Positions 4,474 to 48,778 of a stretch of DNA of 64,000 nucleotides are shown piece by piece. Under the pieces are notes generated by a model. The model searched no databases. It saw only the letters and a program-made list of their open reading frames with translations, and was not told where the DNA came from. The position numbers and the translations under genes were made by a program. The DNA comes from Perkinsela sp. CCAP 1560/9 (taxonomy: Eukaryota; Protista; Euglenozoa: Kinetoplastea), in contig CBFFSA010000013.1 of NCBI GenBank assembly GCA_965644495.1, forward strand, positions 124,001-188,000, written 5' to 3'. Each line of letters begins with the position of its first letter. The first letter of the stretch is position 1.

Positions 4474-5244
4474 TTATTGATTTCTGTACCTAAAAGCAAA
4501 ACTCCCTGCGTTTTGTAGCTTATCTACGTACTTCATACGACATAGTAAATCCGGGTTATTTGACAAGCTGACTTCTCTAAGAGATCGAGGCAACTGACTT
4601 AGATCAACAGTACCAGAAAATGCGTTGCTGCTTAATCCCAAGTGAAGCAACAATGGGGGAAGGGCTGTAAGGTCGGGAGTTCCGCACAGACGATTGCGCG
4701 AAAGAAAGAGCTTTTCCAATCGCGGAGGAAGACTTGTGAGACAGACTTCTCCAGTGAAACCATTACAGCTCAGTCGGAGAACTTTCATACTTTGCGGAAG
4801 AACAGTTAAGTCTAGTTCTCCATGAAAATGATTCTTTGTAATAATAAAAGTCTCATGAATTGGAAGAAGATCACCCAGTAAGGCGCGTCCCGTCATATTA
4901 TTATTTTGTGCACTAAAGAGGAACAGAGTTTCTGGAAAATGATGAATAAATAATTCTCCGGATAAGTGCTTCTCGTCCCAATGAATTTCAGTAATGTGAC
5001 TGCACTCGTTACACTTTACACCGAACCACTCACACGCGGGCGTATCGGTGCTCCAGGATGAGTCCAAGTTTTCAAGCTCTTCGACTAGTCGTGCGAGCTT
5101 GTATTCTTCCGGTAGCATAGCCTGATTTATCTTTCCAGTACGTGCTACTGAGATTCTGCAATCAGATTCCGGCGTAGATGGGTCGATGGCACTGATTTTA
5201 CGTCTCTTAGCCGAAACGTCGTGAGAAGTGGTCAAGAGAATCAT
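4474..5244 (-). CDS. Leucine-rich repeat protein (24-aa LRRs, Cys/Trp N-cap), KRRK NLS-like motif
   Basis: WSTDTPACEWFGVKC cap followed by LPxxLxxLxLxxNxFxGxxDL repeats. Confidence 0.9.
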   Translation of the reverse strand: MILLTTSHDVSAKRRKISAIDPSTPESDCRISVARTGKINQAMLPEEYKLARLVEELENLDSSWSTDTPACEWFGVKCNECSHITEIHWDEKHLSGELFIHHFPETLFLFSAQNNNMTGRALLGDLLPIHETFIITKNHFHGELDLTVLPQSMKVLRLSCNGFTGEVCLTSLPPRLEKLFLSRNRLCGTPDLTALPPLLLHLGLSSNAFSGTVDLSQLPRSLREVSLSNNPDLLCRMKYVDKLQNAGSFAFRYRNQ

Positions 5245-5560
5245 GAAAATGATTGAACAGGTATTTAGAACTATTTTTTAAGTGAACTATTACGGTATAC
5301 AAACATGAAAATATCACTTTTCAACATGAAAGATCCTATCTCCGCAAACCGAAACTAAGTCCCTACTTCATTCTGCCCCTTACAATGGAGAATAGCTGCA
5401 GATTGCCGGAGATATGTGGAGATATCTCAATCAAATAACACCAGAAGAAAGAATTGCAGCAGGAGAGTTAAATAGAAGTAGGAGATGTGGGCCATTACTA
5501 CGGGGAAGGCCAGGGCGCGGCTACGGGAACGCCTGCAACTCTATTGCAGTTACAAGAGAA

Positions 5561-5629
5561 CCTCATAGACACACCGCTGTCGTAGAGCTCTGCAATTTGT
5601 TTCTTTACGTAACGTGGTGTGGACCTCAT
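5561..5629 (-). pseudogene. N-terminus of the Tc1 transposase at 410..1222
   Basis: Minus strand reads MRSTPRYVKKQIAELYDSGVSMR, overlapping the GVSMR at the start of the 410..1222 fragment. Confidence 0.85.
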
Positions 5630-5948
5630 AGAAAATAAGAATTTTAGGTAAGAATTTTAGGTTATAGAGTTTATCTTACACTGTTACATTTTGCACTCTA
5701 TACAGGGGGGGCCACGAAAACTGACAAGGTCCGCATTTTAGCGTCCTGAGGCAGTTTGAGCTGATTTTTGTTGCAAACGAGAGATCTCGTTCTGAATATC
5801 GTGTCTACGCTATTTAAAATACAAAAACGTTCGCCGGAAAACATTTCCAATGAGTTACAAAAGTGAAATTTTAAAGATTTTGCAAATTGAAAAACGGGTC
5901 TAAAATTCGTAATTTTTACGTACCACGGCCCAAAAAGTACCCAGAAAT

Positions 5949-6424
5949 ATATCATAGAAATTGTTGAGATACTTAAATTTACTGTATCAGAGATGGACCT
6001 CATAGACACACCGCGGTACCGGGTTTGAAGTCATGCGGTGGCCCCCGCAGTCCCCTGACTTAAATGCAATCGAAAACGTTTGGGGAGAACTCAAGCGGCG
6101 CCTTGCAGTGCACGATGATCCACCAAGCGGGGTCCGAGAGTTGTGGGAGAGGGTAAAAATGGAATGGGCGAACATACCACCCTCAGTATGTCGTGCCCAG
6201 GTGGACAGTATGCCTGCCCATATGAAGGCAGTGCTGAAGGCTCGTGGGGGGAATACTAAATACTAATTTTACGGGCATAATCTCTCTTGGGCGATTACGT
6301 TTCATCTATTTTTTGGGACAAGATTTTCTCTATAATAGGTAGCAAAAAAACCTTTCGAATGCTAAACTTTTTTATATTCGTTCTTATTTCTTTGGTAGAA
6401 CGAACTGAGGTGAACTATCTACGG
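5949..6424 (+). mobile_element. Rearranged Tc1 fragment (transposase C-terminus 6015..6266 plus 3' flank)
   Basis: WPPQSPDLNAIENVW...KARGGNTKY*; inverted twin of 1..476. Confidence 0.9.
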
Positions 6425-6549
6425 GTACTATTCGGTGACACTCATGCCTACACTACTAGCACACATTACCAGCGCAACGGTGATATTTAATCAATAGCTC
6501 TATGCAATAGAAAAAAAACCGAAACATTCGAACGGTTTTTTTGCTGACT

Positions 6550-7775: not shown

Positions 7776-8465
7776 CTAATAAGGAGGGGTAGGCGCCCAA
7801 AGTCTTATTCGTGTCCCTGCTACAGATCTGTAACGCAGTCTTCCCCACTGCGCTACATCAATTACGCCTTCAAGCTCGCGATTATCGGTAAAGAGAATAG
7901 AATCCATTGTCAAGGGAAGTAGTCCAAACAGAAGTCGGGTAAAATTATTAGCTTCTACATCGACGCAACTCATTTGAGGGGGAAGTACCGTCATGTCTAA
8001 CGTACCTGCAAATTTGTTGTGGGCAAGTTGGAGGTGAGTAAAAGTCTGTGGCAAGTCTGGGAGATTTACTTCACCAGTCATCTTATTGGCTCGTACAGTC
8101 AACCATTCCATTGAGCAAGGAAGGTCTCGAAGATTGACACCCCCAATAATGTCATTGTTCGTCAGATAAACAACCACCATACTGCTAGGAATAAATTCCC
8201 ATAATAAAGTTCCTCGTAAAGATCTACTACCCCAATTAAGTTTTATTGCCTTCCCCTCGGAATTGATTTTCACCTCGATCCATTCATGAATAGGTTTACT
8301 GGCGTCCCATGAAGGATCGGGGTTTTCAATATTTCTTATAAATCGAGACAGTTCAATTTCTTGGGACAGAGCAACTCCCCGAAGCTTTCCTAATCGGGAT
8401 GGAGCATCACGATCATGGCACAGAGCGGATAAAGAAATAAAGACGCCCTTGTACAGCGCAACCAT
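7776..8465 (-). CDS. Leucine-rich repeat protein
   Basis: SRLGKLRG..LSQEIEL motif, W..W cap and 24-aa LRRs. Confidence 0.88.
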   Translation of the reverse strand: MVALYKGVFISLSALCHDRDAPSRLGKLRGVALSQEIELSRFIRNIENPDPSWDASKPIHEWIEVKINSEGKAIKLNWGSRSLRGTLLWEFIPSSMVVVYLTNNDIIGGVNLRDLPCSMEWLTVRANKMTGEVNLPDLPQTFTHLQLAHNKFAGTLDMTVLPPQMSCVDVEANNFTRLLFGLLPLTMDSILFTDNRELEGVIDVAQWGRLRYRSVAGTRIRLWAPTPPY

Positions 8466-8906: not shown

Positions 8907-9895
8907 CTAGTTTTTCTCCTCTTTGCGTAACTTCTCGTACGTCCGCTTGGAGATTCGAGGAACGGAGGACTCAATCCATTTGACTGGCAGAACAGGCTTG
9001 GGATACACCACTGAAGTAAAATCGTTCTCTTTCAGGTATAACTTAAACTGCCGTGGACCGCCAGGTAGGTGACATAGATCTACGATTCCACTTAATGTGC
9101 TGTTCGTGAGGTCAAGGACTTTCAACCCGGTTGGAAGATGAGTAAGATTTATCTCGCCTTCAAGCCCACGCAACTTGTTGTTTCTGAGATAAAGAACTTT
9201 CAGGGCGGTTGGAAGACGAGTCAGACTTATCTCGCTTTCAAATAGATTATGATTGAGCGCCAAGTCTTCCAAAGTTTCTGGAAGCTCTGTAAGACAGAGA
9301 GGACCTTGAAACAAGTTGTATGCCAAATCGAGTTTTTGTAGAGGAGGGAGGTGACATAAATCAACTTCTCCGATAAAGCGATTCTGCGCAGTATTAAGTT
9401 CTCGCAATGTGTTTGGAAGTTTAGAAAGATCTGCGATTCCTTCAAACCAATTTTTACCAATGACCAAACGTTCTAAGTTGGGAGGAAGTACAGTAAAATC
9501 GAAAGTTTCTGTGTGCATATGACCCCAAATGGAGAAGTTTTGGAGAGGATCGACCAATTCCTCTGAGGGAATATGCCCGATACAACGATATTGATCCATA
9601 TTGACATCGGCTTCAAAAATCACCGTGTGTGAGGGCATAACCCGATAATTTCAAAGTCTTTGTTGCAACGTACCCCATTCCAAGAACACACGCGAATAGA
9701 CTCATTTTTCCATATCAAAGCTAGACAAGTGTGTGTATGAGTATGCTCCACAAAACGTTTCAATTGATCCTCATCAGAGCTTTCAGAGGCTGTATGAGTC
9801 GTGAATTGGTCCAACCGTTTCCGTTTTAGAGGAGGGCTAGTGGTATCAGGTGCGCGTACTCCAAGAAAGCGGACGACAAAGAGGAAAAAGATCAT
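8907..9895 (-). pseudogene. LRR gene split by a frameshift or deletion near 9640 (N-cap ORF 9620..9895 plus LRR ORF 8907..9638)
   Basis: Cap VCSWNGVRCN is in one frame and the LRRs in another; PPLKRKR motif near the N-terminus. Confidence 0.75.
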
Positions 9896-10163: not shown

Positions 10164-11927
10164 CTACACTACATCCGCGCACGTTATACTGGACACCACA
10201 ACAATCACCTTAGACATCTTTCCCGGCGCCGCACTCTGCTCCCTTTGGTACGCTTGCGCTGCACCGTACAACCCCTCCCGTCTCCCTTGAGGTCTTGTTT
10301 TCCCTGCACCTGCAACAGCCTCCCACATCCCCCTCCGGTTCCCCGGCCTCTCCCCTCCCTCCGTCGGTGCGTCCCGTTGGCTCGCGTCCCTGGGCAAGGG
10401 CTCGAGGAACGGCAACGAGAGCACCAGGGACTGGACATTTAACTCCAGCACCACGGCCGTACAGAGTACGGTGCCATAGAGTGCATCACTCGCGGTAGCC
10501 CCCCGCATGAGGTACACAACCGTGTGTTGTAAATCCCGAGGCAGCGGGGCGTGAGGGAGAGGGGAAGCCTCGACAACCGAAGCCATCTCCCCCCTCTCCA
10601 TCTCGCTTTTGTTTTTTACCCCCCCGAATACTTTTTCAGAGGTTAGGGGTTTACTCCTTTCCCCTTTCTTCGAGTGTAAACGAAAGAACTCCACCCGTTC
10701 TAACGGAATGGTGTGGGTCGCGGGACTCACCCGCACCGACGCGGCTCCGTAGAACCACCGTTGCAGGTTCTCCCTCACCCGGAAACCGGAGGGAAGTGCC
10801 ACCACCCCGGTCGACACAGGAAGACACTCCACACCTACCTTTAAAAAGGTAGCGGTTCTCCCCTCCCTATTGTTGTTACCCTTTTCTTCATCCCCTGGTT
10901 GACCGCGATTTTGTTGACCGCGATTTTGTTGACCGCGATTTTGTTGCTCGCGATTTTGTTGCTCGCGATTTTGTTGCTCGCGATTTTGTTGACCGCTCCC
11001 CACCCGGCTCGCGATTTCATGCGCCAACCTGTCGTCGCCCAACACGACGACGTGGGTGACACGAAGCCGATCCACCACCCCCCCCACGGTCTCCAGCGCC
11101 ATCCCGGGGGGCGTGTCAATGACCACCCCACCGGAGGCCACCGTGTCGCTGGTGTGATGCGTGAGGCGCTGCTCGGTGAGGTGACAGAGACGCTCGAGGG
11201 CGTGGGCATAAACCGCGGGGTCCTCGAACGGGCGAGCGGTCCCGACCGGGAGATGCAGCCCGTTGGTCCCCGCCACCGCGACCTCATCGATCGCGTTGGG
11301 GTGGTCCCAGGTGCAGGCGGTGAGGACCCCGGGGGGACCGGAGAGGGGGGCGTGGGGGTCGAGCTCGAGAAGCGTGGGGGTGTGACCGCAGCGGGCGGCG
11401 TAGTTCAGGAGGATACGACACAGGGTGGTTTTGCCGGAGCAGGGCGGGCCGAGGACGAGGGTACGGGGCGAGGCCAGAGGGGGTGGGGAGGGGGGAGATG
11501 GGGCCCCGGTGGGGAGGCCACGCAGGCGGGCCTCGTGAAGCAGGCTGTGAAGTTCAGCGTAGAAACGCATGGGGGTGGAGCGTGAAATATACGCAGAGTG
11601 GAGTATTTTCGAATTTGTGCATTGAAATTTTACGGTGCATCCTGTCCAGGAGAAGATGGCGAGGGAGCAGCCCCAAGGCAGGGTGTAGGCCACCCCAGGA
11701 AGAAGGGGAGCGCCAAAGATCTCGGCATGTGCTCTATGCTCCTCAAGTAAAGTGACTTCAGCAAGATGACTCGGTATTGAGGAATCCCCATCATCGCGAG
11801 AAAACGGAATGGGTAGGAAGATGCGGAGTTCGGACTCCGGACACAATACAAAGTTCTGAGTATCTGTGGGCACGTCAAGTTTTCCCTGTAAGTTGAAAGT
11901 TTCATGCCCTCTAGCGAGATAGTGCAT
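10164..11927 (-). CDS. CLP1: Clp1 polyribonucleotide 5'-kinase / cleavage-polyadenylation factor
   Basis: ELR..AEIFG.., AIFSWTGC, TPM..Y, Walker A GPPCSGKTT followed by LCRILLNYAAR, and GGVVIDT. Confidence 0.92.
   Translation of the reverse strand: MHYLARGHETFNLQGKLDVPTDTQNFVLCPESELRIFLPIPFSRDDGDSSIPSHLAEVTLLEEHRAHAEIFGAPLLPGVAYTLPWGCSLAIFSWTGCTVKFQCTNSKILHSAYISRSTPMRFYAELHSLLHEARLRGLPTGAPSPPSPPPLASPRTLVLGPPCSGKTTLCRILLNYAARCGHTPTLLELDPHAPLSGPPGVLTACTWDHPNAIDEVAVAGTNGLHLPVGTARPFEDPAVYAHALERLCHLTEQRLTHHTSDTVASGGVVIDTPPGMALETVGGVVDRLRVTHVVVLGDDRLAHEIASRVGSGQQNREQQNREQQNREQQNRGQQNRGQQNRGQPGDEEKGNNNREGRTATFLKVGVECLPVSTGVVALPSGFRVRENLQRWFYGAASVRVSPATHTIPLERVEFFRLHSKKGERSKPLTSEKVFGGVKNKSEMERGEMASVVEASPLPHAPLPRDLQHTVVYLMRGATASDALYGTVLCTAVVLELNVQSLVLSLPFLEPLPRDASQRDAPTEGGERPGNRRGMWEAVAGAGKTRPQGRREGLYGAAQAYQREQSAAPGKMSKVIVVVSSITCADVV
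10898..10996 (-). repeat. 15-bp coding minisatellite (QQNRE/QQNRG) inside CLP1
   Basis: About 6-7 tandem cgcgattttgttgac/gct units. Confidence 0.95.
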
Positions 11928-13395: not shown

Positions 13396-13440
13396 TTATA
13401 GTAGAGAAAAAAGAAAGAAATAGAGAAACGAATGTACGTA

Positions 13441-14228: not shown

Positions 14229-14260
14229 TATAACAAAAAGTGAGTTATAATTATAATTAT

Positions 14261-14900: not shown

Positions 14901-15787
14901 TTTCTTTTTTAGCCTCTTCGTTAAACGCGGTGGTTGTTTTCAACTTAGAAGTCACTCATGCTGCGCGCTTCGCGTTGAAAACTACCGCCGCGTTTAACGA
15001 AGAGCCTAAAAAAGAAAATTTAGCCTGAAAAACGGAAAGATTATAGCCAAAAATAGCCGAATTTCGGGTAAAAATGGGGTGATTTTCGCGTATTTTTGCT
15101 CTCAGAGCACTAAATCCGACATTTGCGCGTGGGAAATCACTCGTAGGCATGAATGAAAGCCTACCGAATGTAAAAGGTAGAGAATGCGACTCCAACCATA
15201 CCATTCTTTCGACACAAAAATGCCCCTTTAGGTCCGAAAAATACTTTTTCACCTTTTTTAGTCAAAAATGGGTCATTTTGAGGGGCGCACCACGGTTTGA
15301 AGAAGGGATACCTTGCGAAAGCAACTGCGGAGAAAGCTAGTGTAGGTCCCAAACTATCAAAATACAATAGGGGAAACGATTTTGGAAAAATATTTTTTTT
15401 GTCATTTTTTTCGCCAAGTTGAAATTTTTTTCAAAAAATTTTTTCCGAAAAAATCCGAACTTGGCGGACCCGTCCTGCGGATACGCGGGGGGGTCACCCC
15501 CGGGTAGGGGTGTGGAAAATGCGCGCCAAGACCCCGGCTACCCTTTCTGCGTTTTTTTTTCGAAAACTAATTTTTTCGAAAAAATTTGCTCGACCATGAA
15601 CCCCCCTGGACCCCCCCCATGGACCCCCCACTTTTTTCAATTTTTTTTTTCAGTTTTGGTCCACCGGAGCCCCCTTTTATATTTTTTTCTTCTATTATAT
15701 TACTGTGTTCCTCTTTATATTTTCACTGTTTTTGTTCACTTTTTTTCAATAATCGAGGGTAGAGCGGTAGTTTTACAACCACCGCAA
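14901..15787 (+). mobile_element. Non-coding hairpin-ended element, copy 1
   Basis: Nearly identical to the reverse complement of 20266..21195; 44-bp-arm palindrome at one end and a short hairpin at the other. Confidence 0.85.
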
Positions 15788-17610: not shown

Positions 17611-18088
17611 AAACTATGTAAACCCTCCCGACGGTTATTGTTCACATTTTTTATTGTTCACATTCTTTATAGTTCACAATTTTTTGAAATAACCTTGGCG
17701 GATCACCGTCTTGATTTGTAAAATCATTTGGATTGCAGAAGGAATTTCATCGGGAAACTTCAAGGTAAATAACATATTGTGTTGTTCCGAGCGACGGTGA
17801 AGCAGGCTCTGTTTCAGCGGATGCGTTGTCAGATGATGATTCTTCCAATATTAGCACAAGTGATGCGACCCTCAACGAAGCAAGATCTGAGGAAAATTCT
17901 TCTGAAACAGAAGCAAACGAATCTTCTGAAACAGATGACTCCAATGAAACTGAGACAGAAGATAGTTCTGCAGGATCCTCGGAATGCTATGGAGTCCTCC
18001 TTATCTCGTCCGGATGTTGTTCTTTCTGCATTTAACAGATTAGGTTACCTTCATCCTTGCAAAGCTTCCATTAGAAACATTGATTATC

Positions 18089-18116
18089 AAGATACAGTTT
18101 CTGTACCTTGTTGGTA
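18089..18116 (+). other. Spliced-leader (mini-exon) 3'-half-like sequence with GT donor
   Basis: aagatacagtttctgtaccttgttg|gta versus kinetoplastid SL ...AAGATACAGTTTCTGTACTTTATTG|GTA (recalled consensus). Confidence 0.6.
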
Positions 18117-21195: not shown

Positions 21196-21244
21196 TATAT
21201 ATTTGTATACTTGTTCCTCTCTTTCTCCCGTACTTTTCACCCTT

Positions 21245-34292: not shown

Positions 34293-34852
34293 ATGTAACC
34301 TCTTATAATAATATTTTCTCAAAACACATAGAGTCATGCTATATCTTTCTTAACGTCGATTTCTTAACCTTCGATTTACTAGCTACTAATTTGGGCGGGG
34401 GCTTTAGGCCTTGCCATGCAGGTGGAATGCCTTCCTGTAGGTGCAACATACCCCTTCCGGGTCGATGGGTAATTACCCATTAGCGGGTCTGTGCGGGTAA
34501 ATTACCCGGGTCTGTGACCCAGTTACCCGCACCGACCCACACAGACCCGCATCGGCGCACTAGCCATTAAATACAAAATGATTTCCTCTCAAGTGTGCTG
34601 ATTCGTAGGATTGGCACGGAATGCTCTATGTACAGAAACGGTATCTTTAGCGATGAGGAATTCCTTCCATAAGAAGAATTCCTTCTACTGATTTGCTTGT
34701 GTCGCCCATCTATTTTTTTTTTTTTGGTGTGAACCCCCTAGGCCCACCGGAAGCCTACCCCCTAACACTGCAATGGTACCAATTTTTTCTATTTTTTTTG
34801 GCCAGTCGAGTTTACCCTCGAGTCTTAGCAAACTAAGGTGAAACTATAAAGA

Positions 34853-37794
34853 CATACCCCTGCCGGGTAAATGGGTAATTACCCGGGTAAATTACCCATT
34901 TACCCGCTTTATCCACGTTTACCCGCTCGATGACAGGAACTGAAAAGTTGTACCTTAAATGATTTTGAATGTTTTATTTTTGTATATCTATCAGAAAAAT
35001 CTCAGATTCTTTTTCCTTCAATCATAATATCATTTACTTTGCTGATAGCGTTGCACTTTTATCTTCTATTTATTACATGCCCAAACGAAGATCATCGACA
35101 GTCAGTACGCCCGAACCGATCGTTTCATCTGAATCAAGCTCTGAGGATGAGATAGTGACCCCGGACCCAAAGCGATCAAAGCGAAACGAGCGGCACAAGA
35201 TGACGGTGAAGTCTTTGTCTGGGCACTTTAATTTGGCTCGTTGCCCGCCAAACTGTCCGCATGAACACGCGGATGTTCTCACAGACCCCCTTAACCAAAA
35301 AGTACACTTTGTGTGCACGACAGAGGGTTGCACGTTTCAATCTCATTGCCGATTTAAAAACGTCTATCATAAGCATGTACGCAAGTGTCGTGAGGGCGTG
35401 GAGCGAGCTCGCTTGGCGACTGCGCAGGTTTCGTTTATTCAGAGAGCGGCCGTTCAAAGATTCGCTGGGAAGGTGCTCCCATGTCTACAAACCCTAACAA
35501 ACCTTCCGTCGAGTAAATTCGTTTGGCTGATTCGCAAGTATGAGGATCTCCGCCCCGACCTTCCACCGAATGTTATCAAAGAGGCTATTCCGGAAACAAA
35601 TTTGAAGAAGTGGCATCAACACTGTGAAATTTTATCCCACGAAGTCTGGGAGAAGCTTTGCGCTGCCATTGACTTACACATGGTGTACGGAATTGCCGTT
35701 GATGCAGGAATCGACCGAGCTAAGTCTGAGCACATTTTATTGTCCGTCTTATATGTAGGCCCTGAAGAATACGTCTTACCTCCCATTTATTCTCCTAGTC
35801 ATCGTGCTTTTGATGGAAAAACAGTAGCCGAACAACTAGTGTTTACTCTTCAGGCGAATCTTGGTGAGCACCGACTTTTAAAGCTAAAATTCATGATCGC
35901 GGACGGAAGTTCTGTGAATCACGTGGCACGTAACAATTGCGAAGGAGCTCTCAAACGCATATATGACCAAATTTCCCCGATTGGGGAGAGTGACACTGCA
36001 GCACTTCAGCAAGGCATATCTTCTCGTGTCCCTTCGATAATACTCCTGTCTTGCATAGGTCATATGCTGAATAACATTTGCCAAACGACCTTGAAGCCCT
36101 ACGAAGAGTCACCGTGCTTTCTTTTCAAAAAAGCGTTCAGTCAGTCCTTTTATTCAGGAGGACGAGCGAGTGCAGCAAAAGGGAAATACAAGGGAGTTGC
36201 TCTGGATCTCGCTCTGGCTCGCTTCGATCAGGGAGTTCTGAAGGCGGAAGAAACCTTCCGTCAATCGTACCATGGCCTTGGGGAGGATGCCCCAGTTTTC
36301 TGCCGTCAACAACTACAATCTACTCTAATCGGATGCCTCGAAAAGCTGAAGGAGGTATCTCCGGACATGTCCAATTCTCTAATTGCCACACTGTCATGCA
36401 ATGTCACGTCATGGTACGAGAAGCATCGCCAGCTTCTTGCTCAGGGACCGAAATTGATTAGTGCTTTGCAAGTAGCGCGTGAAACTGAGGGTGTCGAAAC
36501 TCCGAAGCTCGGAGGTGTGACGCGCTGGTGTCAGGATAAGTTTACATGTATGCAATTTTTGGCGAAGAATATGGACACAGTATCGGCATTTGTGTACAGC
36601 GAAAGTGAAAAGGCACGGGCGTCAAAGCCCATTATTAAGTGTAAGCGTTTGCTGGACCGGTACGGAGCTTTGGAAATTAAAGCAAGCTGCTTTATTTCTT
36701 GAACAATGCAGCGTTTTGCATTCAGCATTGAACGAATTTTCAGACATGTTGGGGAAACCGATGGCAACTCATGTCGGAACTACGCTGCAGCTCTTGTTCG
36801 AACATAGCGAAAGTGACGAAGCGCCCTCGCGAATGCGAGAAGCACTTCTTTATCACAAGACTCGTCTACAAAAAAATCATAATATGCGCTTTTGGAACGA
36901 TGTTCTCTGGTTCCGTCCCGGATGGATCGTTCAGTTCGCTCGTCCTTGTGGTCTTCTCCCCATCTCGGTAGCTCGAGCAAATAATGTTTTTGACAAAAAT
37001 GCGGACGGTCCGTCGGCCGAGCAGCCGATCTTTCGTATTTCATCCGATGAGTGGGAAAAATACTTAGCATGCCTCGATTTCAGTTGGGATCCGTCTAAGT
37101 TCAGCAACGAGTACGAATGGTGGTGTGGTCCTGGGTGTGAAATGTTCCCAGCGATTTACGAAGCTGCCGTACACTACGTTTGGACGCCACCCCTGGTCAA
37201 CAAGTGCGACTCCTGGCTTTCCGTGCTTGGATATATGTATAGCTCACGCCAGGCCTCCCTTACTCCCGATGTTGTATCGCACCAGATATTCGTGCGAGGA
37301 AATTGCGACAAGCTAGGATATATGACTCAAGGTGATTTTGATTCGCTGGAAAATGATAGTGAGCTTGAATCATTGTCAGATACAGAACATAACTGACTTA
37401 ACATTATGTGGATTGTACGCAGTAGTTGTATTTGATTTTAGTACAGTGATTACTATACAGTATAGTATTAGTACTGTATGAAGCGGGGATTAGCCCGCCA
37501 GGTCAAGAAAAAAATAAAAACAAATAAAAAAAAATAAAATTGTTTGGTTTAGGGGATAGGAAAGGGGGGAAACCGAATGAAAGACGGATTTTTCCTTCTA
37601 TGGATTGAGATACTGTTTCTGTAGCGACAACTTGCTCAGCAAAGTTGGCACAGTCATCGAGCTTTATTCTAGTACGGGATCGTATGGTTGGTTGGTAAAT
37701 CTGGGTGAAAGCGGGTAAATGGGTCAATGACCCGGGTAAATTACCCGAGTTTACCACCACGTGGGTAATTACCCATTTACCCGGCAGGGGTATG
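34853..37794 (+). mobile_element. Full-length hAT-like transposon, 32-bp TIR, 6-bp TSD taaaga
   Basis: taaaga|catacccctgccgggtaaatgggtaattaccc ... gggtaattacccatttacccggcaggggtatg|taaaga. Confidence 0.92.
35077..37396 (+). pseudogene. hAT-like transposase with a single frameshift near 36693
   Basis: N-terminal Cys/His cluster, IAVDAGID, MIADGSSVN, SCIGHMLNN (CxxH), VTRW, and a dimerisation-like C-terminus EWW..FPAI..WTPPLVNKCDSWLS..RQASL. Confidence 0.85.
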
Positions 37795-39262
37795 TAAAGA
37801 ATCACCACATAGAAAACATTTATACGGCAGTGTATGATACTGTGATACTATGCATAGCATTAATATTAACCATAAAATATTATGCATTAATCATTACTGC
37901 ATAACAGATTCATATTCTTCGACATCAGGTACTTCAACATCGCTACCATCCTGAGAAACACCTTCGTCCGGAAGAATATAACCCAATTTGTCGCAATTTC
38001 CACGTACGAAGATCTGGTGAGAAACGACATCAGGAGCCAGGGAAGCCTGTCTGGAACTGTACATGTACCCGATTATAGACAGCCACGAATCACATCTGTT
38101 AACTAAGGGAGGCGTCCATACGTAGTGCGTAGCCGCTTCGCAAACAGAGGGAAACATCTCACTTCCGGGACCACACCACTCGTACTCGTTCAGAAATACC
38201 GTCGGATCCCAACCATAATCGGAGCAGGAGACATACTTCGACCACTCGTCAGCCGAGATTTCAAAGATCGGAGTTTCAGCAGATGTTCCATCCGCATTCT
38301 TATCAAATATGTTGTTCGCTCGACCCACTGAAATGGGTTGTAATGCGCATGGACGAGCGAATTGCACGATCCACGCTGGGAGAAACCATAGAATATCGCT
38401 CCAAAATCGCATGTTATGGTTATTCTGCAAGCGCTTTTTGTGATAAATCAAAGATTCTTTCAGAAGTTCCGGTGCAGATTCACTCTCGCTGTGCTCGAAT
38501 AAAAGTTGCAGCGTTGTTCCAACGTGCGTGGCCATTGGCTTACCAGCATTGTCCGAAAATTTACGCAAGGCGCTGTGTAGGATCTTGCATTGCTGCAGAA
38601 AATCTTCGCAACTGGCATCGATCGCCCTGAAACCCAACTGATCCAGCAAACGTTTACATTTCAGTATGGAGGGTGAAGCCTTGGGCTTCTCACTTTCATT
38701 GTGAACAAATGCCGAGACAGTGGCCATGTTCTCGGCCAAGAACTGCATGCAGGTGAATTTGTCGGTACACCATCGTGCTACACCTCCTAGCTTCGGTGTT
38801 TGAATTCCCCGAGTTTCCCGTACCGCTTGTAAGGACTTCAGCAACTTTACTCCCTCAGAGAGTAGGAGACAATGCTTCTCTTTCCACGTTTTTTGATCTG
38901 TTGACAGTGCCTCAATTATTGTTTCCGACTCGCACGGTGAAACGTCCTTTAATTTCGACACACATTCAAGCAGGGTGTTCTGTAGTTTTTTTCGACAGAA
39001 GGTAGAAACATCTTCGCCAAGTCCATGATATGATTGTCGAAACGTTTCTTCTGCTTTTAGGACACTTCGATCGAAATGGGCGAGCGCCAAATCCAGGGCA
39101 ACACCCCGATATTTGCCTTTCATGGCGCTTGCACGTCCTCCGGAGTAAAAAGCTTGACTGAAAGCTTTTTTAAAGGCGAAGCATGGGAGCTCTTCGTATG
39201 GTTTCAAGGCTGTTTTGGCAAACATTGTTTAGCATATGTCCGATGCAAGATAGGAGCACTGC

Positions 39263-39761
39263 AATGGAAGCTTGCCCTTCACTGTTCCCGTTAGTTCGGG
39301 ATTGTTCGTGAGGTTAAAGGCTCCAAAATCGCGCTCTTGCAGTATAGCGAGATCCACGTGACCACTAAAACAACAGTTTGATAGGCCCAACACCGTGAGA
39401 AATGGGGGGAAATTCTCAAAACAAAGTGCTCCCGAGAACAATTGTTGCCGATCAACATTTTCGTGAGGGCTTCGGGGAGAACAGAAAAATCTACCCCCCC
39501 TCGCAGCTTATTTCTTTGCAAACCAAAATTTCTCAAGGTAGAAGGCAGATATTTCCACTCTACTGTACCTTGAAGTTTTAGTTCAGTCCAAATAAGGGCA
39601 TGAACTTCATTCTCGATATAGCAATACGCACCCATCCACTTACATGCAGGCGTGTCTGTTGTCCATGAGGGGTGGGGGTTTTCTATACCACGGATGAAAT
39701 TCGCCAGCAGATATTCGTTTGGAAGAAAGGTACCACGTACCTTGGCGGGGCGTGACTCCAT
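39263..39761 (-). pseudogene. LRR pseudogene (frameshift near 39435; 3' end fused to the hAT fragment)
   Basis: SRPAKVRGTFLPNEYLL, WTTDTPACKW cap; LRRs continue in a second frame. Confidence 0.8.
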
Positions 39762-42042: not shown

Positions 42043-42948
42043 TTATATACGTTGCAGTTCCGTCGAAATGTTGTAAGGAATATTCTCTCCAAAGCTTGTT
42101 AGCTGATTCCGGGTAAGGTCAACCCAGAACAGATTCGGTGGTAGGCTACTGAGATCTACACTTCCCTCATACATATTCTTTTGCAGGTGCAAATACCGCA
42201 AACTTTCCGGAAGATTCGCTAAATTAATTTTGCCTTCAAAGCGATTGCAATCTAGTCCCAAGTTGTTTAGATTAGGCGGGAGTGCTGTGAGGTCTGTATT
42301 TCCACAGAAGCGGTTCCCAGAAAGACGTATGCGAATTAATGTGCGTGGAAGATTTGTTAAAGAAACCTCTCCAGCGAATTCATTCGAAGACAGTCGTAGG
42401 TCCATAAGACTCGGAGGAAGATAATTCAAAGAAATTTCCCCCGATAATTGATTATCCGAAAGAATCAAAACATTGAGATCATGCGGTAAATGATTCAAGT
42501 CAATCGACCCTTCGAAGTTATTTTCTGCGAGACAAAGTATTTTCATAATTCGTGGCATCTCCGACAAGTCCAGCTGGCTTACTAATTCACAATCACTTAA
42601 GTATAGAGTGTGTATTTTTTCCGACAAACAACCAAGAGGCAATGACCCCCCTAATTTGTTACGAGAACCTCGAAAGTGCTCGAGTGAGCGTGGCATGTTC
42701 TCCCAGGAAAGCGGACCGCGTAGGCCAATAGAAGCCCAGTTCAGCTCGAGTAGTATACGCTCGTCATCGCAGCGCGCTCCGTACCATTCACAAGCCTCTG
42801 TGTTAGGGGTCCATGTTGGCTCGCTGTGCGAGACATTTCGAACGAAACGAACTAATTCGTACTCTGTGGGAAGCACAGACCCCCGGACTTTACCGGAACG
42901 AGTTAAAGGTGTAGTGTAATCAAAGTCAGCAGCAGAAACTGTGATCAT
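42043..42948 (-). CDS. Leucine-rich repeat protein
   Basis: TRSGKVRGSVLPTEYEL, WTPNTEACEWYGARC cap and 24-aa LRRs. Confidence 0.92.
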   Translation of the reverse strand: MITVSAADFDYTTPLTRSGKVRGSVLPTEYELVRFVRNVSHSEPTWTPNTEACEWYGARCDDERILLELNWASIGLRGPLSWENMPRSLEHFRGSRNKLGGSLPLGCLSEKIHTLYLSDCELVSQLDLSEMPRIMKILCLAENNFEGSIDLNHLPHDLNVLILSDNQLSGEISLNYLPPSLMDLRLSSNEFAGEVSLTNLPRTLIRIRLSGNRFCGNTDLTALPPNLNNLGLDCNRFEGKINLANLPESLRYLHLQKNMYEGSVDLSSLPPNLFWVDLTRNQLTSFGENIPYNISTELQRI

Positions 42949-44544: not shown

Positions 44545-45729
44545 CTATGATATGCAGCATGAAGATTTTCCAGTAAATGTAATGTTTTTCTCATTTTGCG
44601 GATTAAAAGTGAGTTGCAACCCTTTGTATGCAGAAAATATCGTTTCATCAACCTCTCCGGTAAGAAAGTTATTTTGAATCGATAACACGCGCAACAAGGG
44701 CGGCAACTTTGTGAGGCAAAGATTCCCAATAAACAAATTCCCATTCAGGTGCAAAGTTTTTATAGCGGGAGGTAAGTGCAACAGATCCAGCGTGGCACTT
44801 AAAGCATTGTTATCCAGTGCAAGAAACTCAAGACATGACGGCAGCATGTTCAAATAAATACCACCCGCTAGCCTATTCTGCGATAGGTTCAACTCAAGCA
44901 AGGAAAACGGCAAAAAGTTCAAACAAATATCACCACTAAACCGATTATGCCCAGCTCCCACAAATTGCAACCCCGTCGGAAGCGTCGTAAGATCCAGCTC
45001 CCCGGTAAAGCCATTTTCATACACCCCCAGCACCACGAGTTCGCGCGGGAGGGTCTCTGTGCGAATCCCCCCGGTAAACCGGTTCGCCCCGAGCTCCAGC
45101 ACACGCAGCCCCGGTGGGAGCTGTGCGAACTCCACAGCCCCGGTGAACCGATTATGGTGCAGCGAGAGGCGTTGGAGGGCGCGGGAGAGGTACTCGGGGC
45201 TGACCACCCCGCCGAGTTGGTTCTCCCCCACCGAGAGCACCTGGAGCCGTGGGAGTCGATGGGTGGCATAGAGCCCCCCGGAGAAGGTGTTGCGCGCGAG
45301 ACGTAGGGTCTCGAGGGCGGTACACCGCTCCGGGATGTCGATACGCCCGCTGAGGGCGTTGTCTCGGAGGTTAACATGGACCGTGGTGGAGGGGAGCGCG
45401 GGCCAGTGGATACTGCCCTCGAGTCCCATCACGGCCCAGTCAATGGAGATTACGGCGCCATCGGGGCCGCATTTGACCCCACGCCACTGGTGGACGGGGA
45501 GGAAGCAGACGGGGTCGCTGGGGTGGGCGGAGAGCGTGGATTGGAACCACTCCCCGGGGTTGTAGAGGTACTTGACAAAGGCCTGGAGTTGAGTCTCTAC
45601 GGAGGGTGACGCGGTGAAGGAAAGGGAGCGACGGGTGAGTGGAGAGGTTGCTTTTTGGTCTTTGTCGAAGTTGGAAGAGGGATCAAGAGAGTGCACGAAT
45701 GCAGAGGGTGCGCTGTGAAGGAATAGCAT
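44545..45729 (-). CDS. LRR protein with C-terminal CaaX (CCIS)
   Basis: First ATG at 45729; PVHQWRGVKC cap, LRRs, ends KSSCCIS*. Confidence 0.88.
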   Translation of the reverse strand: MLFLHSAPSAFVHSLDPSSNFDKDQKATSPLTRRSLSFTASPSVETQLQAFVKYLYNPGEWFQSTLSAHPSDPVCFLPVHQWRGVKCGPDGAVISIDWAVMGLEGSIHWPALPSTTVHVNLRDNALSGRIDIPERCTALETLRLARNTFSGGLYATHRLPRLQVLSVGENQLGGVVSPEYLSRALQRLSLHHNRFTGAVEFAQLPPGLRVLELGANRFTGGIRTETLPRELVVLGVYENGFTGELDLTTLPTGLQFVGAGHNRFSGDICLNFLPFSLLELNLSQNRLAGGIYLNMLPSCLEFLALDNNALSATLDLLHLPPAIKTLHLNGNLFIGNLCLTKLPPLLRVLSIQNNFLTGEVDETIFSAYKGLQLTFNPQNEKNITFTGKSSCCIS

Positions 45730-46844
45730 GGAGAGAGAAAAAAGAAAAAAAAACACCCCAGTGCTCTTTTCAAGACAGAAAAGTGATGGTTCTTGCGATA
45801 GCTTTTGTACATGTACAAAATGTACATACAGAAAGGGAGGGAATTCGTAAGGGTTCACGTAACGTATACAGAAAGGGAGGGAATTCGTAAGGATTCAGCT
45901 ACTAGTCGTGCTTGTAGAATGTTTATTTTCATAGACAGGCAGAATGCCTGGAGTCCAACGGACCGAAACTATTAATCATCATTTAGAGTAGTTCGTGATA
46001 AGAAAAAGTCCCCCCTTTTTTCTAAGAAAAAACTTACAAAAAAAGTGTGTAAGTGGCTAACTTAGAGGAATGAAACTTAAAAAAACGTCACCTGGACGAA
46101 CCGAAGCGAACCGAGGCGAACCGACCCAATCCCATTGAAACCAATGACGATTTCTACTTGGCGTTTTTTTCAAAGCTAGCTGCAAACTTTCCATGTTCAA
46201 AAAAATGTGCACTTCTATATGATTTTCTTGTATACTCCCACATTACACGCTGCAGTCCTAGAGGCACAGTTCCGGCACTGTGAAGTGAAGTCTTTACTGG
46301 AGGACGGAGAAAACCTCTAGTATCATGGAAATTTTCCTTGCAGTATGGAGGTGCCTGTGATGGTACGGACGCATGTAAGTGTTTGTAAATTTCTTGTTGA
46401 CTTATTTCTCCTTTCCTTCTTTACTCCCCCCCCCCCCCCATGGCAGAACTCCCCAAGGGTCTATTGTTCTGTGCGTACTGTGGCTCGAAGTTCGAACCAC
46501 CCTCCCCTCCCACCGGCTGTGCCCGACGTGTGCACACACAACCGGCCAGGCGTACCGACCCATCTGGGACGCACCCTCATCTCTTGGGCCAGCCCACGGC
46601 GGACGCAAGCAGAACACCTCCTCGCGTGAGTCCTCCCGTTCCCTCTCCCGCGATAGCAGGCCGTGCCTCTTTTGCACGCAGCCGTTCTCCCCTGGACATC
46701 ATTTCCACCGTTTCTGTCCCGTGTGCGCGGAATTGAGGGCCCAGCGCCAGAGCTCGGCCCCCCACCCATCACCCGGATCCAAGTGGACGAAAGGTTCGTT
46801 GGAAAGCGAAAGTAAAAGTAGGCGCCAGCGGAAGAGGATGGTGG

Positions 46845-47200
46845 TTTACCACCGTCATGGAGATCCGCGGACAAGAAATGGGAAGAACCCATTGGAAGTT
46901 ATTCAAACGCAGAGACGCTGAAATATTACATATCTTCATCCTGTCGCACTTGACGAGCGCGAGGGCTGTTGTTTTCACTGACTGTTGGGGGGCGTTTACC
47001 ATTCTGGGGGACTTTAGTCGCCACCACGCTGTCAATCACAACGTTTGTGAACTTCCAAGGCTACCACACTAACACCGCTGAAGAGTCGAATCGCATCATC
47101 AAAGACTGGGTGAGAAAACAGCACTGTAATTTTGGTGAGAAGTGCAACGTAAAGTTGAAGGTGAGCGACAACGATGTGCCATTAAGAATATTTAAGGACA
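46845..47200 (+). pseudogene. Merlin transposase fragment
   Basis: KRRDAEIL, VFTDCWGAF, HHAVNH, GYHTNTAE across a frameshift. Confidence 0.8.
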
Positions 47201-47668
47201 TTCATGATTTTTGTGATTGTATTCATACATTCCAAAGAAATAGAGGAAGTAGTAAAGGTGCGTATAGATCATGGCGGTTTTTTACTTATTAGAGCATGAG
47301 AAGATTTTGTACAAGATTTTATCTTCGTTCTACAACATATTCTTCACAAGTACACATGTGGCCACACCACCGATGACGCGTCCCTTCCGTTGCTGCCTTT
47401 ACTGCAGTGTAAGCAAACATCTTCTGTAAATTGCAGAACATCCTTTTTAGCCTAAATTGACAAAATTGAACAGCCGATTCCGGATGTAAACCGATGAGTG
47501 ATTAAAAACATAGACTTTTAGTAAAATATGCACGGCTAGTGAAATATAATAATTCCCATGCTGTGCGTGTAGTGACTACGTTTCGAAAACGCTTCATTCA
47601 GTGTTCAGTAAGTCCAGTTCCAGATTTCGTATATTTCTCGTTGGCTGCTTGCACCCCATGCGCTTACT

Positions 47669-48778
47669 CTACGATAAGATGCATTTTTCTTTTCCAAGCT
47701 GAAGCGGCCCAGGTCGTTGAGGATTACCTGTAAACTGTGTACCAGTTGGAATTGCGGATTTATCAATAGGGCCCGTAAACTCGTTATTTTGTATTTCAAG
47801 AATTTTAAGCTCGGGCGGCAAATTTTGGATGAACAGGCGACCAAAAAATTGGTTGTCATTAAGTTGAAGAGTGTGAAGCATCTTCGGGAGGTGTGATAAC
47901 TCGAGTGTTCCACTTAGTCTGTTATGCGCCAGAGAAACTGAAACAGAAAAGGGAGGAAGCATGCTCAGATAGATCCCTCCAACCAACTCATTATTGGAAA
48001 GGTGAAGCTCAGTGAGCACCGGTGGTAAATACGACAGGCAGATTTCGCCGTGAAGCCTGTTATACATAACGTCTAGTGACTTCAACCGAGAAGGGAGCTC
48101 GGTGAGGTCTAGAGACCCAATCAGTCGATTGTGATCGAGCCCCAGAATTTCTAAAGCCGGCGGAAGGCCCACCAATGATATCTCCCCTGTGAGGTGATTC
48201 GACCCCAGAAACAGCACGTGCAGCCCTGCGGGAAGTGCGCTCAGCTCGAGGCTTCCCCCCAAAGCATTGTGGTGCAATGAAAGACCACGGAGAGAGGGGG
48301 CCAGTTCCTCCAGCCGCAGCTGACCGCTGAGAAGGTTCTCACTCAGAAACAACCTCCGTAGTACACGGAGCCCCAGAGTGGGATATAATCGTCCGGAAAA
48401 TGTGTTCCTCGAGAGCCGCACAATCTCAAGCGAGGTGCAATGTTCGGGAAGTACGACGGAGCCACCGAGAGCATTCTGGCGCAAGCTGATCTCACGCAGA
48501 CTCCGTGGCAGAGCGGCCCAGTTGATGCCGCCCTCCAGACCCATCTCGCCCCAAGAAATGCGCTGGATTTGACCGTCGGGGTTACATGTGACCCCTTCCC
48601 ATTGGTGAGCGGGGAAGGGGAGATCACACCCGGACGAAGTAGGGCGCAACCACGAGTCGTGAGGATTGTAAATGTATTGAACCAAATTCTGTAGCTGCAG
48701 CTCCGGGGAGAGGTCGGCGTTTAGCGGGGGAAGGGCTTGCGAAGAGGACTCCGAGAGGTGATGGGAAGAGGTATCCAT
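47669..48778 (-). CDS. LRR protein with C-terminal CaaX (CILS), paralog of 44545..45729
   Basis: Co-linear with its neighbour (YNP..W, P.HQW.GV.C, ICL..LP, GGIYL.MLP, NPQ); ends KEKCILS*. Confidence 0.9.
   Translation of the reverse strand: MDTSSHHLSESSSQALPPLNADLSPELQLQNLVQYIYNPHDSWLRPTSSGCDLPFPAHQWEGVTCNPDGQIQRISWGEMGLEGGINWAALPRSLREISLRQNALGGSVVLPEHCTSLEIVRLSRNTFSGRLYPTLGLRVLRRLFLSENLLSGQLRLEELAPSLRGLSLHHNALGGSLELSALPAGLHVLFLGSNHLTGEISLVGLPPALEILGLDHNRLIGSLDLTELPSRLKSLDVMYNRLHGEICLSYLPPVLTELHLSNNELVGGIYLSMLPPFSVSVSLAHNRLSGTLELSHLPKMLHTLQLNDNQFFGRLFIQNLPPELKILEIQNNEFTGPIDKSAIPTGTQFTGNPQRPGPLQLGKEKCILS

Follow-up and report, generated by a model that had tools for sequence, protein, structure and literature searches.

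A large leucine-rich repeat family with a conserved, modular N-terminal tail in a Perkinsela-like endosymbiont

The window, as the whole analysed stretch of 64,000 nucleotides is termed here, harbors eight leucine-rich repeat (LRR) loci, A to H (Table 1), which were all found among the minus-strand open reading frames, in agreement with the original prediction, and all of which carry an LRRNT_2-type cap. Each gene is predicted from its sequence to encode a small soluble protein composed of LRRs only. The six Asp-ended leaders previously listed (A, B, C, D, F and G) were recovered exactly as quoted, and E and H are leaderless. The basic motif claimed for five loci was located by alignment in A, B, D, E and F and is lacking in C, G and H. 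The W..C.W.G..C cap is recognizable in all eight, being degenerate in B, which is devoid of the Cys pair and gave no match in a Pfam search, and having its first Cys replaced by His in G and H. The repeat period had been put at 24 residues but was measured as 23, and of the proposed range of about 3 to about 18 repeats the upper end of 18 stands, while the lower end was found at about 4.

Two pseudogenes had also been claimed, and in this haplotype both C and E are indeed frameshifted, the former near 9630, with its two pieces read separately and unjoined, and the latter near 39440, with its 3' end adjoining a transposon-related fragment; E is nevertheless intact elsewhere, as its 201-aa counterpart P0310 lies on a different contig of a public assembly. 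An allele-like copy of A was identified as P0229. Gene D differs from its allele on L003 by nine synonymous and nine non-synonymous changes, four of the latter being located in residues 2-36 and none in the motif or the cap.

The source is a Perkinsela-like endosymbiont inside Paramoeba (Paramoeba atlantica-type culture), which bears out the host-associated kinetoplastid proposed earlier. The PNK3P encoded in the window has Perkinsela as its best named match (43% identity), a spliced-leader mini-exon copy is present that deviates from the conserved kinetoplastid 3' half at 2 of 19 nt (about 0.06 such matches expected by chance), and a family member occurs in the Paramoeba atlantica MMETSP transcriptome. 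The mini-exon copy also provides the spliced-leader sequence by which 5' ends of mRNAs can be mapped.

Table 1. The LRR loci and the spliced-leader-like sequence of the window, with the positions of their parts
Feature	Position	Strand	Size and repeats	N-terminus	KRRK-type box	Basic box	Cap	Other
LRR gene A	4474-5244	-	256 aa; ~6 repeats of 23 aa	leader MILLTTSHD, 5218-5244	KRRK, 5197-5208	5095-5142, with cap helix	5011-5055	
LRR gene B	7776-8465	-	229 aa; ~4-5 repeats	18-aa leader, last residue Asp (17 residues before Asp)		8349-8396	8265-8309	
LRR locus C	8907-9895	-		16-residue leader and terminal Asp	KRKR, 9815-9826	absent	present in N-terminal piece	broken: N-terminal piece 9623-9895; LRR piece 8907-9638, other frame
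LRR gene D	30571-32265	-	564 aa; 18 repeats	leader MAISICVCD(D)	KRRK, 32209-32220	32107-32154, with helix	32023-32067	
LRR locus E	39253-39761	-		Met-Glu, no leader		39705-39752	39621-39665	ORF 39291-39761, then other frame to ~39253
LRR gene F	42043-42948	-	301 aa; ~9 repeats	leader MITVSAAD, 42925-42948		42853-42900, with helix	42769-42813	
LRR gene G	44545-45729	-	394 aa from first ATG; ~11 repeats	leader with terminal Asp		absent		C-terminus CCIS, CaaX box, 44548-44559
LRR gene H	47669-48778	-	369 aa; ~11 repeats	Met-Asp		absent		C-terminus CILS, CaaX box, 47672-47683
Spliced-leader mini-exon-like sequence	18076-18113	+	38 nt					GT donor directly after

With a cut-off of E <= 1e-3, a profile of the basic motif and the cap, built from the LRR loci of the window, yielded 11049 matches, and with E <= 1e-30 it yielded 316 representatives. 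Among the best 150 matches, about 100 are short proteins with pairwise identities below 50% and a common layout, in which Met is followed by the leader, in some members by PPxKRRK, and then by a spacer, the basic box and the cap. The tail ahead of the fold consists of short linear modules and spans 4-76 residues. The leader is a hydrophobic stretch of 6-12 residues after Met, mostly small or hydrophobic, terminated by [A/S]-Asp, with a length mode of 7-9 before the Asp. Of 94 representatives, 74 have Asp and 20 have Glu as their first acidic residue (p = 2e-10 against spacer composition), and this residue follows Ala or Ser in 46 of 82 members (p = 7e-11); both p-values overstate the significance, since the sequences are paralogues rather than independent samples. 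A real leader is missing from 18 of the 94, where the first acidic residue stands at position 2 or 3 (Met-Asp, Met-Glu); one of these members sits on a transcriptome contig. The NLS-like KRRK-type box (PPxKRRK) was found in about a quarter (24/94), and CaaX-type C-termini in G, H, P0332, P0338 and P0359. The spacer between leader and basic box evolves freely. In its full form the basic motif reads [RK]x[GAS][KR][VI][RS][GA]xxLPQEYxL, and the columns of the basic box are conserved to about the degree of the LRR consensus positions, nearing the Cys/Trp columns of the cap. The folded part is constructed from the LRRNT_2 N-cap, 4-18 repeats of LxxLxLxxNxFxGxLDLxxLPxx and a family-specific C-terminal cap (..GTxIx..).

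The family is large and modular and, as already suspected from the window, shows birth and death; the N-terminal design is conserved and family-specific, and it extends well beyond the window. The LRR family itself has been reported for the Perkinsela lineage as hundreds of small leucine-rich proteins: 462 were counted in Perkinsela, many of them expressed and of unclear significance (PMC5601477, Supplementary Note 1.4, 2017). Neither an N-terminal architecture nor an NLS or CaaX is mentioned in that note, and the modular N-terminal tail is a real, conserved and previously undescribed element. In the supplementary table of the same work, the P0309 sequence is entered as cytosolic with all targeting-prediction columns negative (PMC5601477).

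Of 83 members, 54 are matched by Pfam LRRNT_2, and the coordinates along that model put LPQEYxL at the beginning of the domain. In the two AlphaFold models (A and F, mean pLDDT about 89), the tail is a low-confidence coil and the cap helix begins directly after Leu-Pro: in A, residues 1-40 have pLDDT 60-67 and the helix occupies residues 46-53, and in F, residues 1-22 fall below 50 and the helix occupies residues 28-35. The N-cap thus opens with a helix formed by the LPxEYxL half of the motif; the basic half, [RK]x[GAS][KR][VI][RS][GA], is conserved, lies just outside the fold and is predicted to be disordered. The objection foreseen with the original prediction, that the motif might be nothing more than the opening helix of the LRR N-cap, consequently applies to the C-terminal half but not to the basic one. 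The best Foldseek matches of LRR F were plant LRR ectodomains (MIK2, PSKR, BRL) and PGIP. The family cap has a conserved Cys pair and an N-x-S/T sequon, as do extracellular plant LRR caps, a resemblance that speaks against a location on the cytosolic side.

The notion that the leader acts as an ER signal peptide is not supported, as the leaders are too short and too weakly hydrophobic: hydrophobic runs of at least 7 residues were detected in 2/93 members and of at least 10 in 0/93. RxLR and RxLx[EQD] patterns occurred at background frequency only (2/93 and 6/93 members). The tail does not look like a secretion signal, the case against secretion resting on hydrophobic-run length and the one published table entry mentioned above, and the CaaX boxes of G and H suggest modification on the cytosolic side. 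The CaaX-type ends and KRRK-type boxes of other family members likewise count against secretion. The proposed design of one leader with variable payloads was abandoned as well, for the leader-Asp-KRRK module was confined to LRR genes and was found on no non-LRR gene in the 118 kb scanned. What is left of the suggested undescribed targeting or export signal is a tail that is conserved and undescribed, while its leaders are unlike signal peptides and half of its motif is structural. Leader length and the [A/S]-Asp end, together with the occurrence of leaders in two divergent Perkinsela lineages, suggest that the leader is selected as a peptide. This apparent selection weighs against a purely cytosolic-side role, which gives the leader no function.

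The genes belong to a lineage-specific LRR family of Perkinsela-type endosymbiotic kinetoplastids, and on balance we lean to the reading that its proteins are made on the cytosolic side and, judging by their sequences, sorted by short terminal motifs. The proteins would be translated on free ribosomes and remain on the cytosolic side; the KRRK box would send a subset to a nucleus and the CaaX boxes another to membranes, and the variable surface positions of the LRRs would bind many different partners. Against this stands the observation that hundreds of genes in a reduced endosymbiont genome are more easily explained by dealings with the host. In a rival reading, which follows the original prediction, the leader, alone or together with the basic box, would serve as a novel non-classical signal for export and deliver the LRR repertoire to the amoeba cytoplasm, where KRRK members would enter the host nucleus and CaaX members would be prenylated by the host. 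We regard this as unlikely, even though the leader is family-specific next to housekeeping genes with ordinary polar N-termini, its length and [A/S]-Asp end are kept among paralogues of about 30% identity and in Perkinsela sp. CCAP 1560/4, its pyrimidine enrichment peaks at codon position 2 (0.73 in leaders vs 0.49 downstream) as fits peptide selection, and the family is very large for a reduced-genome lineage, lying among transposons with presence/absence and frameshift variation between haplotypes. Possible secretion of Perkinsela proteins into the host cytoplasm has been proposed (PMC5601477), and the title of a 2025 article places the endosymbiont in close association with the host nucleus (PMC12079164), both of which count in favor of export. 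It is opposed by the missing signal-peptide-like hydrophobic core, by the members without a real leader, the one on the transcriptome contig having an out-of-frame leader remnant upstream, by the Glu at leader position 2 in the allele of D, by the absence of the module from non-LRR payloads in the 118 kb, by a basic box whose conservation does not extend to the CCAP 1560/4 branch and by the half of the motif that is cap helix.

The leader might alternatively be no signal at all and instead a by-product of the pyrimidine tract used in trans-splicing, either through a start codon that drifted upstream into the tract and lengthened the disordered tail by an innocuous hydrophobic stretch, or by lying upstream of the real acceptor and being absent from the mature mRNA. 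The pyrimidine fraction of leader DNA by codon position is 0.53/0.73/0.65 against 0.45/0.49/0.51 downstream, an equally high pyrimidine content is seen in frame upstream of the ATG, and in the leaderless E and H the tract stops directly at ATG-GAx. Moreover, F, G, C and L002:315 have their first AG past the tract within the leader, no AG precedes the ATG of F over the 110 nt displayed, and the leader sequences are poorly conserved and differ between alleles; the very short UTRs and mostly non-AG acceptors of Perkinsela render the 5' ends of gene models uncertain (PMC5601477). We nonetheless doubt this origin, since in most members no further in-frame ATG separates the leader from the basic box, which is conserved and clearly translated, leader lengths cluster around a peak instead of falling off geometrically, the [A/S]-Asp end departs strongly from randomness, the enrichment is greatest at codon position 2, and such leaders are missing from other genes of the same genome. 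The leader ATG is also the first ATG of one transcriptome contig, a contig that runs collinear with the genome and could represent unprocessed RNA. Far less probable still is a leader that represents a translated spliced-leader fossil, derived from reverse-transcribed and reinserted trans-spliced family mRNAs. Read in one of its frames, the 38-nt mini-exon yields a hydrophobic 12-mer, and the last G of the mini-exon would open the Asp codon; the leader DNA of F matches the mini-exon 3' half with a 10-nt exact core (local alignment p ~0.005-0.007 vs shuffles), the second residue is Ile, Leu or Phe in 37/93 members, and fragments of the spliced leader are scattered by the hundreds through Perkinsela genomes, a part of them overlapping protein genes (PMC5601477). 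Clear significance was reached, however, in only 1 of 21 family 5' regions, the combined p is about 0.09 by hand calculation with regions that are not independent, and residue 2 is marginally enriched in Ile/Leu/Phe (p = 0.07).

Expanded LRR-only or LRR-rich families are familiar from other parasites, namely the nuclear LRR proteins ESAG8 and LRRP of Trypanosoma brucei and the LRR expansions of microsporidia, some of which carry an NLS and which often lie in dynamic, repeat-rich genome regions; they belong to different LRR classes and are not known to have the LRRNT_2 cap or the Perkinsela tail modules. In oomycete RxLR-dEER, CRN LFLAK and Plasmodium PEXEL proteins, a true ER signal sequence comes first and many unrelated payloads follow. 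The Perkinsela family resembles them in its short N-terminal hydrophobic element, spacer and conserved charged motif, and as a fast-evolving family of a host-associated eukaryote, but its leader is not signal-peptide-like, its motif is half structural and its payload is always LRR. With plant LRR receptor ectodomains and PGIP it shares the LRRNT_2 N-cap helix, SWNxS and CxWxGVxC, whereas its period is 23 residues rather than 24, it has no signal peptide, transmembrane segment or kinase, a disordered N-terminal tail precedes the fold and the LP of each repeat stands at the repeat boundary. The leucine-rich proteins of Perkinsela sp. CCAP 1560/4 are likewise hundreds of divergent small LRR paralogues in an endosymbiont nuclear genome (Tanifuji et al. 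2017, PMC5601477). The window belongs to a different, much more transposon-rich lineage tied to the Paramoeba atlantica-type culture (PNK3P 43% identical), and its pre-cap box, GKVRGxxLPQEY, differs from SRLDxxxLSQQALMEMF in CCAP 1560/4; even so, KNH04475.1 and KNH07988.1 of that strain are significant matches of the window-derived profile and start with a short hydrophobic leader ended by Ala-Asp or Asp-Asp.

All eight leucine-rich repeat (LRR) loci of the original prediction, termed A to H here, are present in the window, and the leaders and motifs quoted for them proved identical in sequence to the translated open reading frames. The repeat unit was determined as LxxLxLxxNxFxGxLDLxxLPxx, which occurs in about 4 to 18 copies per locus, and successive repeats follow each other at intervals of 23 residues in 8/8 loci instead of the 24 residues proposed; the range proposed for the copy number was about 3 to about 18. 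Loci C and E, each of which is split by one frameshift, were read as separate pieces and left unjoined. An intact 201-aa version of E, the family protein P0310, was found on a different public contig, so that the break in E, at least, is specific to the haplotype or to the assembly. Moreover, G and H constitute a sub-branch lacking the basic motif and carrying CaaX ends, which was absent from the original prediction.

To place these genes, a profile of the motif-plus-cap region (alignment A1) was searched against 1.84 billion representatives, resulting in 11049 matches at E <= 1e-3, of which 316 reached E <= 1e-30. Among the best 150 matches, about 100 are proteins of 200-330 aa that are organized like the window genes, indicating that the family extends far beyond the window. 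The family members looked up all derive from ENA contigs, and every traced one lies in assembly ERZ24900291; two named 'leucine-rich repeat proteins' of Perkinsela sp. CCAP 1560/4 (KNH04475.1 and KNH07988.1) were also matched at about E 1e-38 to 1e-39. The expansion itself is already known: Supplementary Note 1.4 of Tanifuji et al. 2017 counts 462 leucine-rich genes in Perkinsela, to which tBLASTn adds hundreds, and describes many of them as expressed, unrelated to the bodonins of Bodo and of unclear significance (PMC5601477). The window genes share the hallmarks of this expansion, since they are intronless same-strand genes in a Perkinsela-type nuclear genome with named homologues and hundreds of paralogues. 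The text of the Supplementary Note devoted to the leucine-rich proteins describes no N-terminal signal (PMC5601477), and no description of an N-terminal design in Perkinsela was found in the literature searched beyond this 2017 note on the expansion; as far as these searches reach, the modular N-terminal tail is therefore newly described.

The window is transposon-rich eukaryotic DNA, in which the non-transposon genes are intronless and nearly all located on the minus strand. Its polynucleotide 3'-phosphatase (PNK3P) has its best named relative in Perkinsela sp. CCAP 1560/4 (43% identity, E = 1e-47); its exact sequence is missing from the records, and a copy at 99% identity is found in ERZ24900291, further contigs of which harbor the transposon families of the window at up to 93% identity together with additional family members. 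A locus of the same assembly, L003, matches the window at 94-98% DNA identity but differs by many indels and by a single stretch of about 3 kb that does not align, and is taken as a second haplotype or a sister strain on the basis of this comparison. In addition, the MMETSP0151 transcriptome of Paramoeba atlantica contributes one protein to a paralogue cluster formed at 90% identity or more, and a 38-nt mini-exon copy was identified in transposon-rich surroundings, in which the conserved kinetoplastid 3' half is followed by a GT donor (GTAAAT). It was concluded from such sequence comparisons that the window is nuclear DNA of a Perkinsela-like endosymbiont from a Paramoeba atlantica-type holobiont; the PNK3P relative, the MMETSP0151 paralogue and the mini-exon copy bear out the earlier assignment to a host-associated kinetoplastid.

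Several other elements were observed. The DNA transposons of the window comprise Tc1/mariner DDE_3 copies, including a frameshifted one, as well as a pogo-like DDE_1 open reading frame and a two-ORF element without any Pfam match, a truncated inverted copy of which adjoins locus E. A repeat of ~690 bp occurs as a mutually inverted pair about 5 kb apart, flanking the region that holds the mini-exon copy, and recurs in another genomic locus (L002) at 86-87% identity. For about 3 kb of L003 the window offers no matching sequence, and a segment of L003 pairs with a distant transposon copy near 60 kb. The Clp1 homologue is interrupted by a low-complexity insert composed of QQNRE/QQNRG repeats and is situated in a local G+C-rich block (0.58 vs about 0.43); in a homologue search for taxonomic placement, this insert dominated the candidates, and a single unnamed match resulted. 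An Rfam scan and a tRNA scan of the window found nothing. L002 also encodes a protein that combines an N-terminal half of FHA-like appearance (by eye) with a parvulin (Rotamase) domain after it, an architecture which we take to resemble that of kinetoplastid Par42; farther downstream, L002 contains an RPB2 gene of RNA polymerase II with a called length of 1697 residues.

Features of the window and of related loci (L002 and L006, genomic loci; L005, a transcriptome contig)
Feature	Location	Strand	Remark
LRR locus A	4474-5244	-	KRRK box
LRR locus B	7776-8465	-	
LRR locus C	8907-9895	-	frameshift near 9630; KRRK box
LRR locus D	30571-32265	-	KRRK box
LRR locus E	39253-39761	-	frameshift near 39440
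LRR locus F	42043-42948	-	no AG in the 110 nt upstream of the ATG
LRR locus G	44545-45729	-	
LRR locus H	47669-48778	-	
Leader of F	42925-42948	-	Met-Ile-Thr-Val-Ser-Ala-Ala-Asp
CaaX end of G	44548-44559	-	CCIS
CaaX end of H	47672-47683	-	CILS
C-terminal cap motif, example	30571-30610	-	
C-terminal cap motif, example	L006:10850-10891		
Mini-exon copy	18076-18113	+	
Mini-exon core, weaker partial match	34630-34645	-	beside transposon-like element
Mini-exon core, weaker partial match	37609-37624	+	beside transposon-like element
Transposon-like DNA element	416-1252	+	
Transposon-like DNA element	21203-23431	+	
Transposon-like DNA element	34969-37396	+	
Transposon-like DNA element	37894-39225	-	
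Transposon-like DNA element	60153-61168	-	
~690 bp repeat	14903-15589		
~690 bp repeat	20509-21193		
~690 bp repeat	L002:4051-4732		
Clp1 homologue	10164-11927	-	
Range compared with L003	18472-32554		
FHA-like and parvulin ORF	L002:17463-18830	+	
Leader-like ORF	L005:52-140	+	Met-Ile-Thr-Val... ending Ser-Asp; upstream of the Met-Asp start, out of frame
Acceptor, strong pyrimidine tract plus AG	L005, 2 nt upstream of the real ATG		

The motif preceding the cap had been proposed as a targeting signal, and its two halves turned out to be of different nature. AlphaFold models of F (from 10 sequences) and A (from 83), with a mean pLDDT of about 89 each (88.9 in F), revealed a confident LRR solenoid, the first element of which is a helix starting immediately after Leu-Pro (residues 28-35, TEYELVRF, in F and 46-53, EEYKLARL, in A). 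The region N-terminal of this helix is low-confidence coil, with pLDDT below 50 over residues 1-22 in F and 60-67 over residues 1-40 in A. Pfam PF08263 (LRRNT_2; helix ... SW ... CxWxGVxC) was detected at E <= 0.01 in 54/83 members, where the best one scored 27.4 bits, the cut-off being 20.7, and gene A, at 19.9, remained slightly below it. In the furthest-extending match, model position 10 pairs nine residues past Leu-Pro, which places LPQEYxL at the first positions of LRRNT_2. The helix start and this placement together assign the LPQEYxL half to the first cap helix. The alternative named beforehand, that the motif is simply the first helix of the N-cap, thus describes one half of it according to AlphaFold and LRRNT_2; the basic half is also conserved and lies outside the modelled fold. 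In the 83-member alignment, its Lys-Val-Arg columns hold about as much information as LRR consensus positions and approach the Cys/Trp columns of the cap.

The region before the cap spans 4-76 residues with a median of 27 (n=94 representatives). Its first acidic residue is Asp in 74/94 and Glu in 20/94 (p = 2e-10 against spacer composition, a value overstated by the fact that the members are paralogues), and it is found most often at the 8th-10th residue; a typical leader thus consists of Met and 6-8 residues before Asp. Ala or Ser directly precedes this residue in 46/82 members (p = 7e-11, likewise overstated for paralogues). Leu, Ser, Ala, Phe and Cys are abundant in the leaders, the last at 4.1% vs 1.4% in the spacers, while 18/94 members have no real leader, since an acidic residue already follows at position 2 or 3 (for example Met-Asp or Met-Glu). 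Soon after the Asp, a PPxKRRK-type box, absent from the original prediction, occurs in 24/94 members and agrees with the classical monopartite pattern K-[KR]-x-[KR], often after Pro, of a predicted nuclear localization signal (NLS). The spacer is variable: between the D alleles, residues 2-36 hold 4/9 non-synonymous differences, and the motif and cap hold 0. The CCAP 1560/4 branch retains the Asp-terminated leader but not the basic box, SRLDxxxLSQQALMEMF standing in the place of the latter. At the other terminus, putative prenylation sites of the CaaX type are found in P0332 (CIVL), P0338 (CVIM) and P0359 (CVIL) outside the window, as in G and H. A C-terminal cap motif, ..G-T-x-I-x-[VIL].., lies a few residues before the stop in most members, and a sub-branch of the family ends in C[QR]IA.

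The leader might be a by-product of the pyrimidine tract or of the spliced leader. Its DNA is pyrimidine-rich, as is the in-frame stretch immediately upstream of the ATG; the tract stops exactly at ATG-GAx in the leaderless E and H, and in F, G, C and the gene at L002:315 the first AG past the tract falls within the leader, as an artefact of the tract would have it. Against this, the pyrimidine enrichment peaks at codon position 2 (0.73 vs 0.49), a pattern that selection for hydrophobic and small residues would produce, leader length has a peaked distribution, neighbouring non-LRR genes possess ordinary N-termini, and in most members no other in-frame ATG precedes the clearly translated basic box. 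AG acceptors are given as only 27% and UTRs as very short in the part of the 2017 report concerned with Perkinsela transcripts (PMC5601477), and acceptors are therefore not predictable from sequence. The transcriptome contig L004 carries no spliced leader and is collinear with the genome, and no leader sequence is evident at the 5' end of L005, which includes the upstream pyrimidine tract. The spliced leader was ruled out as an AUG donor because the 38-nt mini-exon contains no ATG. It might still persist as a fossil, in that one frame of the mini-exon encodes a hydrophobic 12-mer and the last G of the mini-exon could start an Asp codon; in F, the leader closely resembles the 3' half of the mini-exon at the DNA level, with 10 nt identical at its core (p about 0.005-0.007), but over 21 family genes the similarity is weak (combined p about 0.09, by hand calculation) and significant only for F.

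An export or effector signal is an unlikely reading of the leader, and the evidence at hand leans against a secretory one. Ahead of the motif, 2/93 members contain a stretch of 7 or more strictly hydrophobic residues and 0/93 one of 10 or more; judged by run length, the leader falls short of the hydrophobic core of about 7-15 residues in a classical ER signal peptide. Unrelated LRRNT_2 proteins from the same profile search display obvious long hydrophobic signal peptides at the N-terminus, which makes the contrast with the family visible within one result set. In a table of the 2017 supplement, the sequence of the Perkinsela member P0309 is classed as cytosolic, and each of its targeting predictions is negative (PMC5601477). 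A D allele carries Glu at leader position 2, and the Paramoeba atlantica contig L005 encodes a leaderless member starting Met-Asp-Asn..., upstream of which a remnant of a Met-Ile-Thr-Val leader persists out of frame; the leader could be lost at this locus if the contig represents an expressed functional copy. The CaaX boxes of G, H, P0332, P0338 and P0359, as predicted sites, would imply modification on the cytosolic side. RxLR (2/93) and RxLx[EQD] (6/93) occur in the first 100 residues at background level and at no fixed position. No leader-Asp-KRRK module was found on non-LRR genes in 118 kb (the window, L002, L003 and L006); since the module is restricted to LRR genes there, the proposed 'variable payload' part of the effector analogy fails. 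Inspection by eye also led us to reject PTS2, mitochondrial presequence and N-myristoylation readings, as neither a PTS2 consensus nor an Arg-rich pattern nor Gly at position 2 was seen.

The best-supported reading is that the family, within the known Perkinsela LRR expansion, consists of cytosolic-side proteins addressed by short terminal motifs. A more far-reaching one, which we consider improbable, would make the leader ending in [A/S]-Asp a new non-classical signal that sends hundreds of LRR proteins through the single plasma membrane of the endosymbiont into the amoeba, the KRRK-bearing quarter going on to the adjacent host nucleus; the leader may then be cleaved before Asp and act together with the basic box. 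If true, this would be a eukaryote-to-eukaryote effector system controlling the host. To our knowledge, no other non-photosynthetic endosymbiosis of a eukaryote within a eukaryote is as well studied as that of Perkinsela in Paramoeba, which is the only such case. The LRR family, to which about 9% of the Perkinsela genes published so far belong, now has a defined architecture of cap, 23-residue repeat, C-terminal cap, modular tail and CaaX subsets. A conserved peptide usable as an epitope and a spliced-leader sequence for mapping mRNA 5' ends are also obtained, which open the way from 'significance unclear' to direct localisation experiments. Proteins reaching the host would represent a host-targeting system of a new kind, and proteins staying inside would represent an unusually heavy investment of a reduced genome in an internal LRR repertoire.

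In RxLR and PEXEL systems, the motif follows a signal sequence and is joined to diverse payloads, and neither feature was found here, in 93 members and in 118 kb, respectively; such systems are further marked by proteolysis at the motif and by delivery to the host cell. Its structural likeness lies elsewhere: the top Foldseek matches of the F model are the plant LRR receptor ectodomains MIK2, PSKR and BRL2 together with PGIP, with a TM-score of up to 0.72, and plant LRRNT_2-capped LRR proteins have the cap and solenoid fold in common with the window family, with a period of 24 residues there and 23 here.
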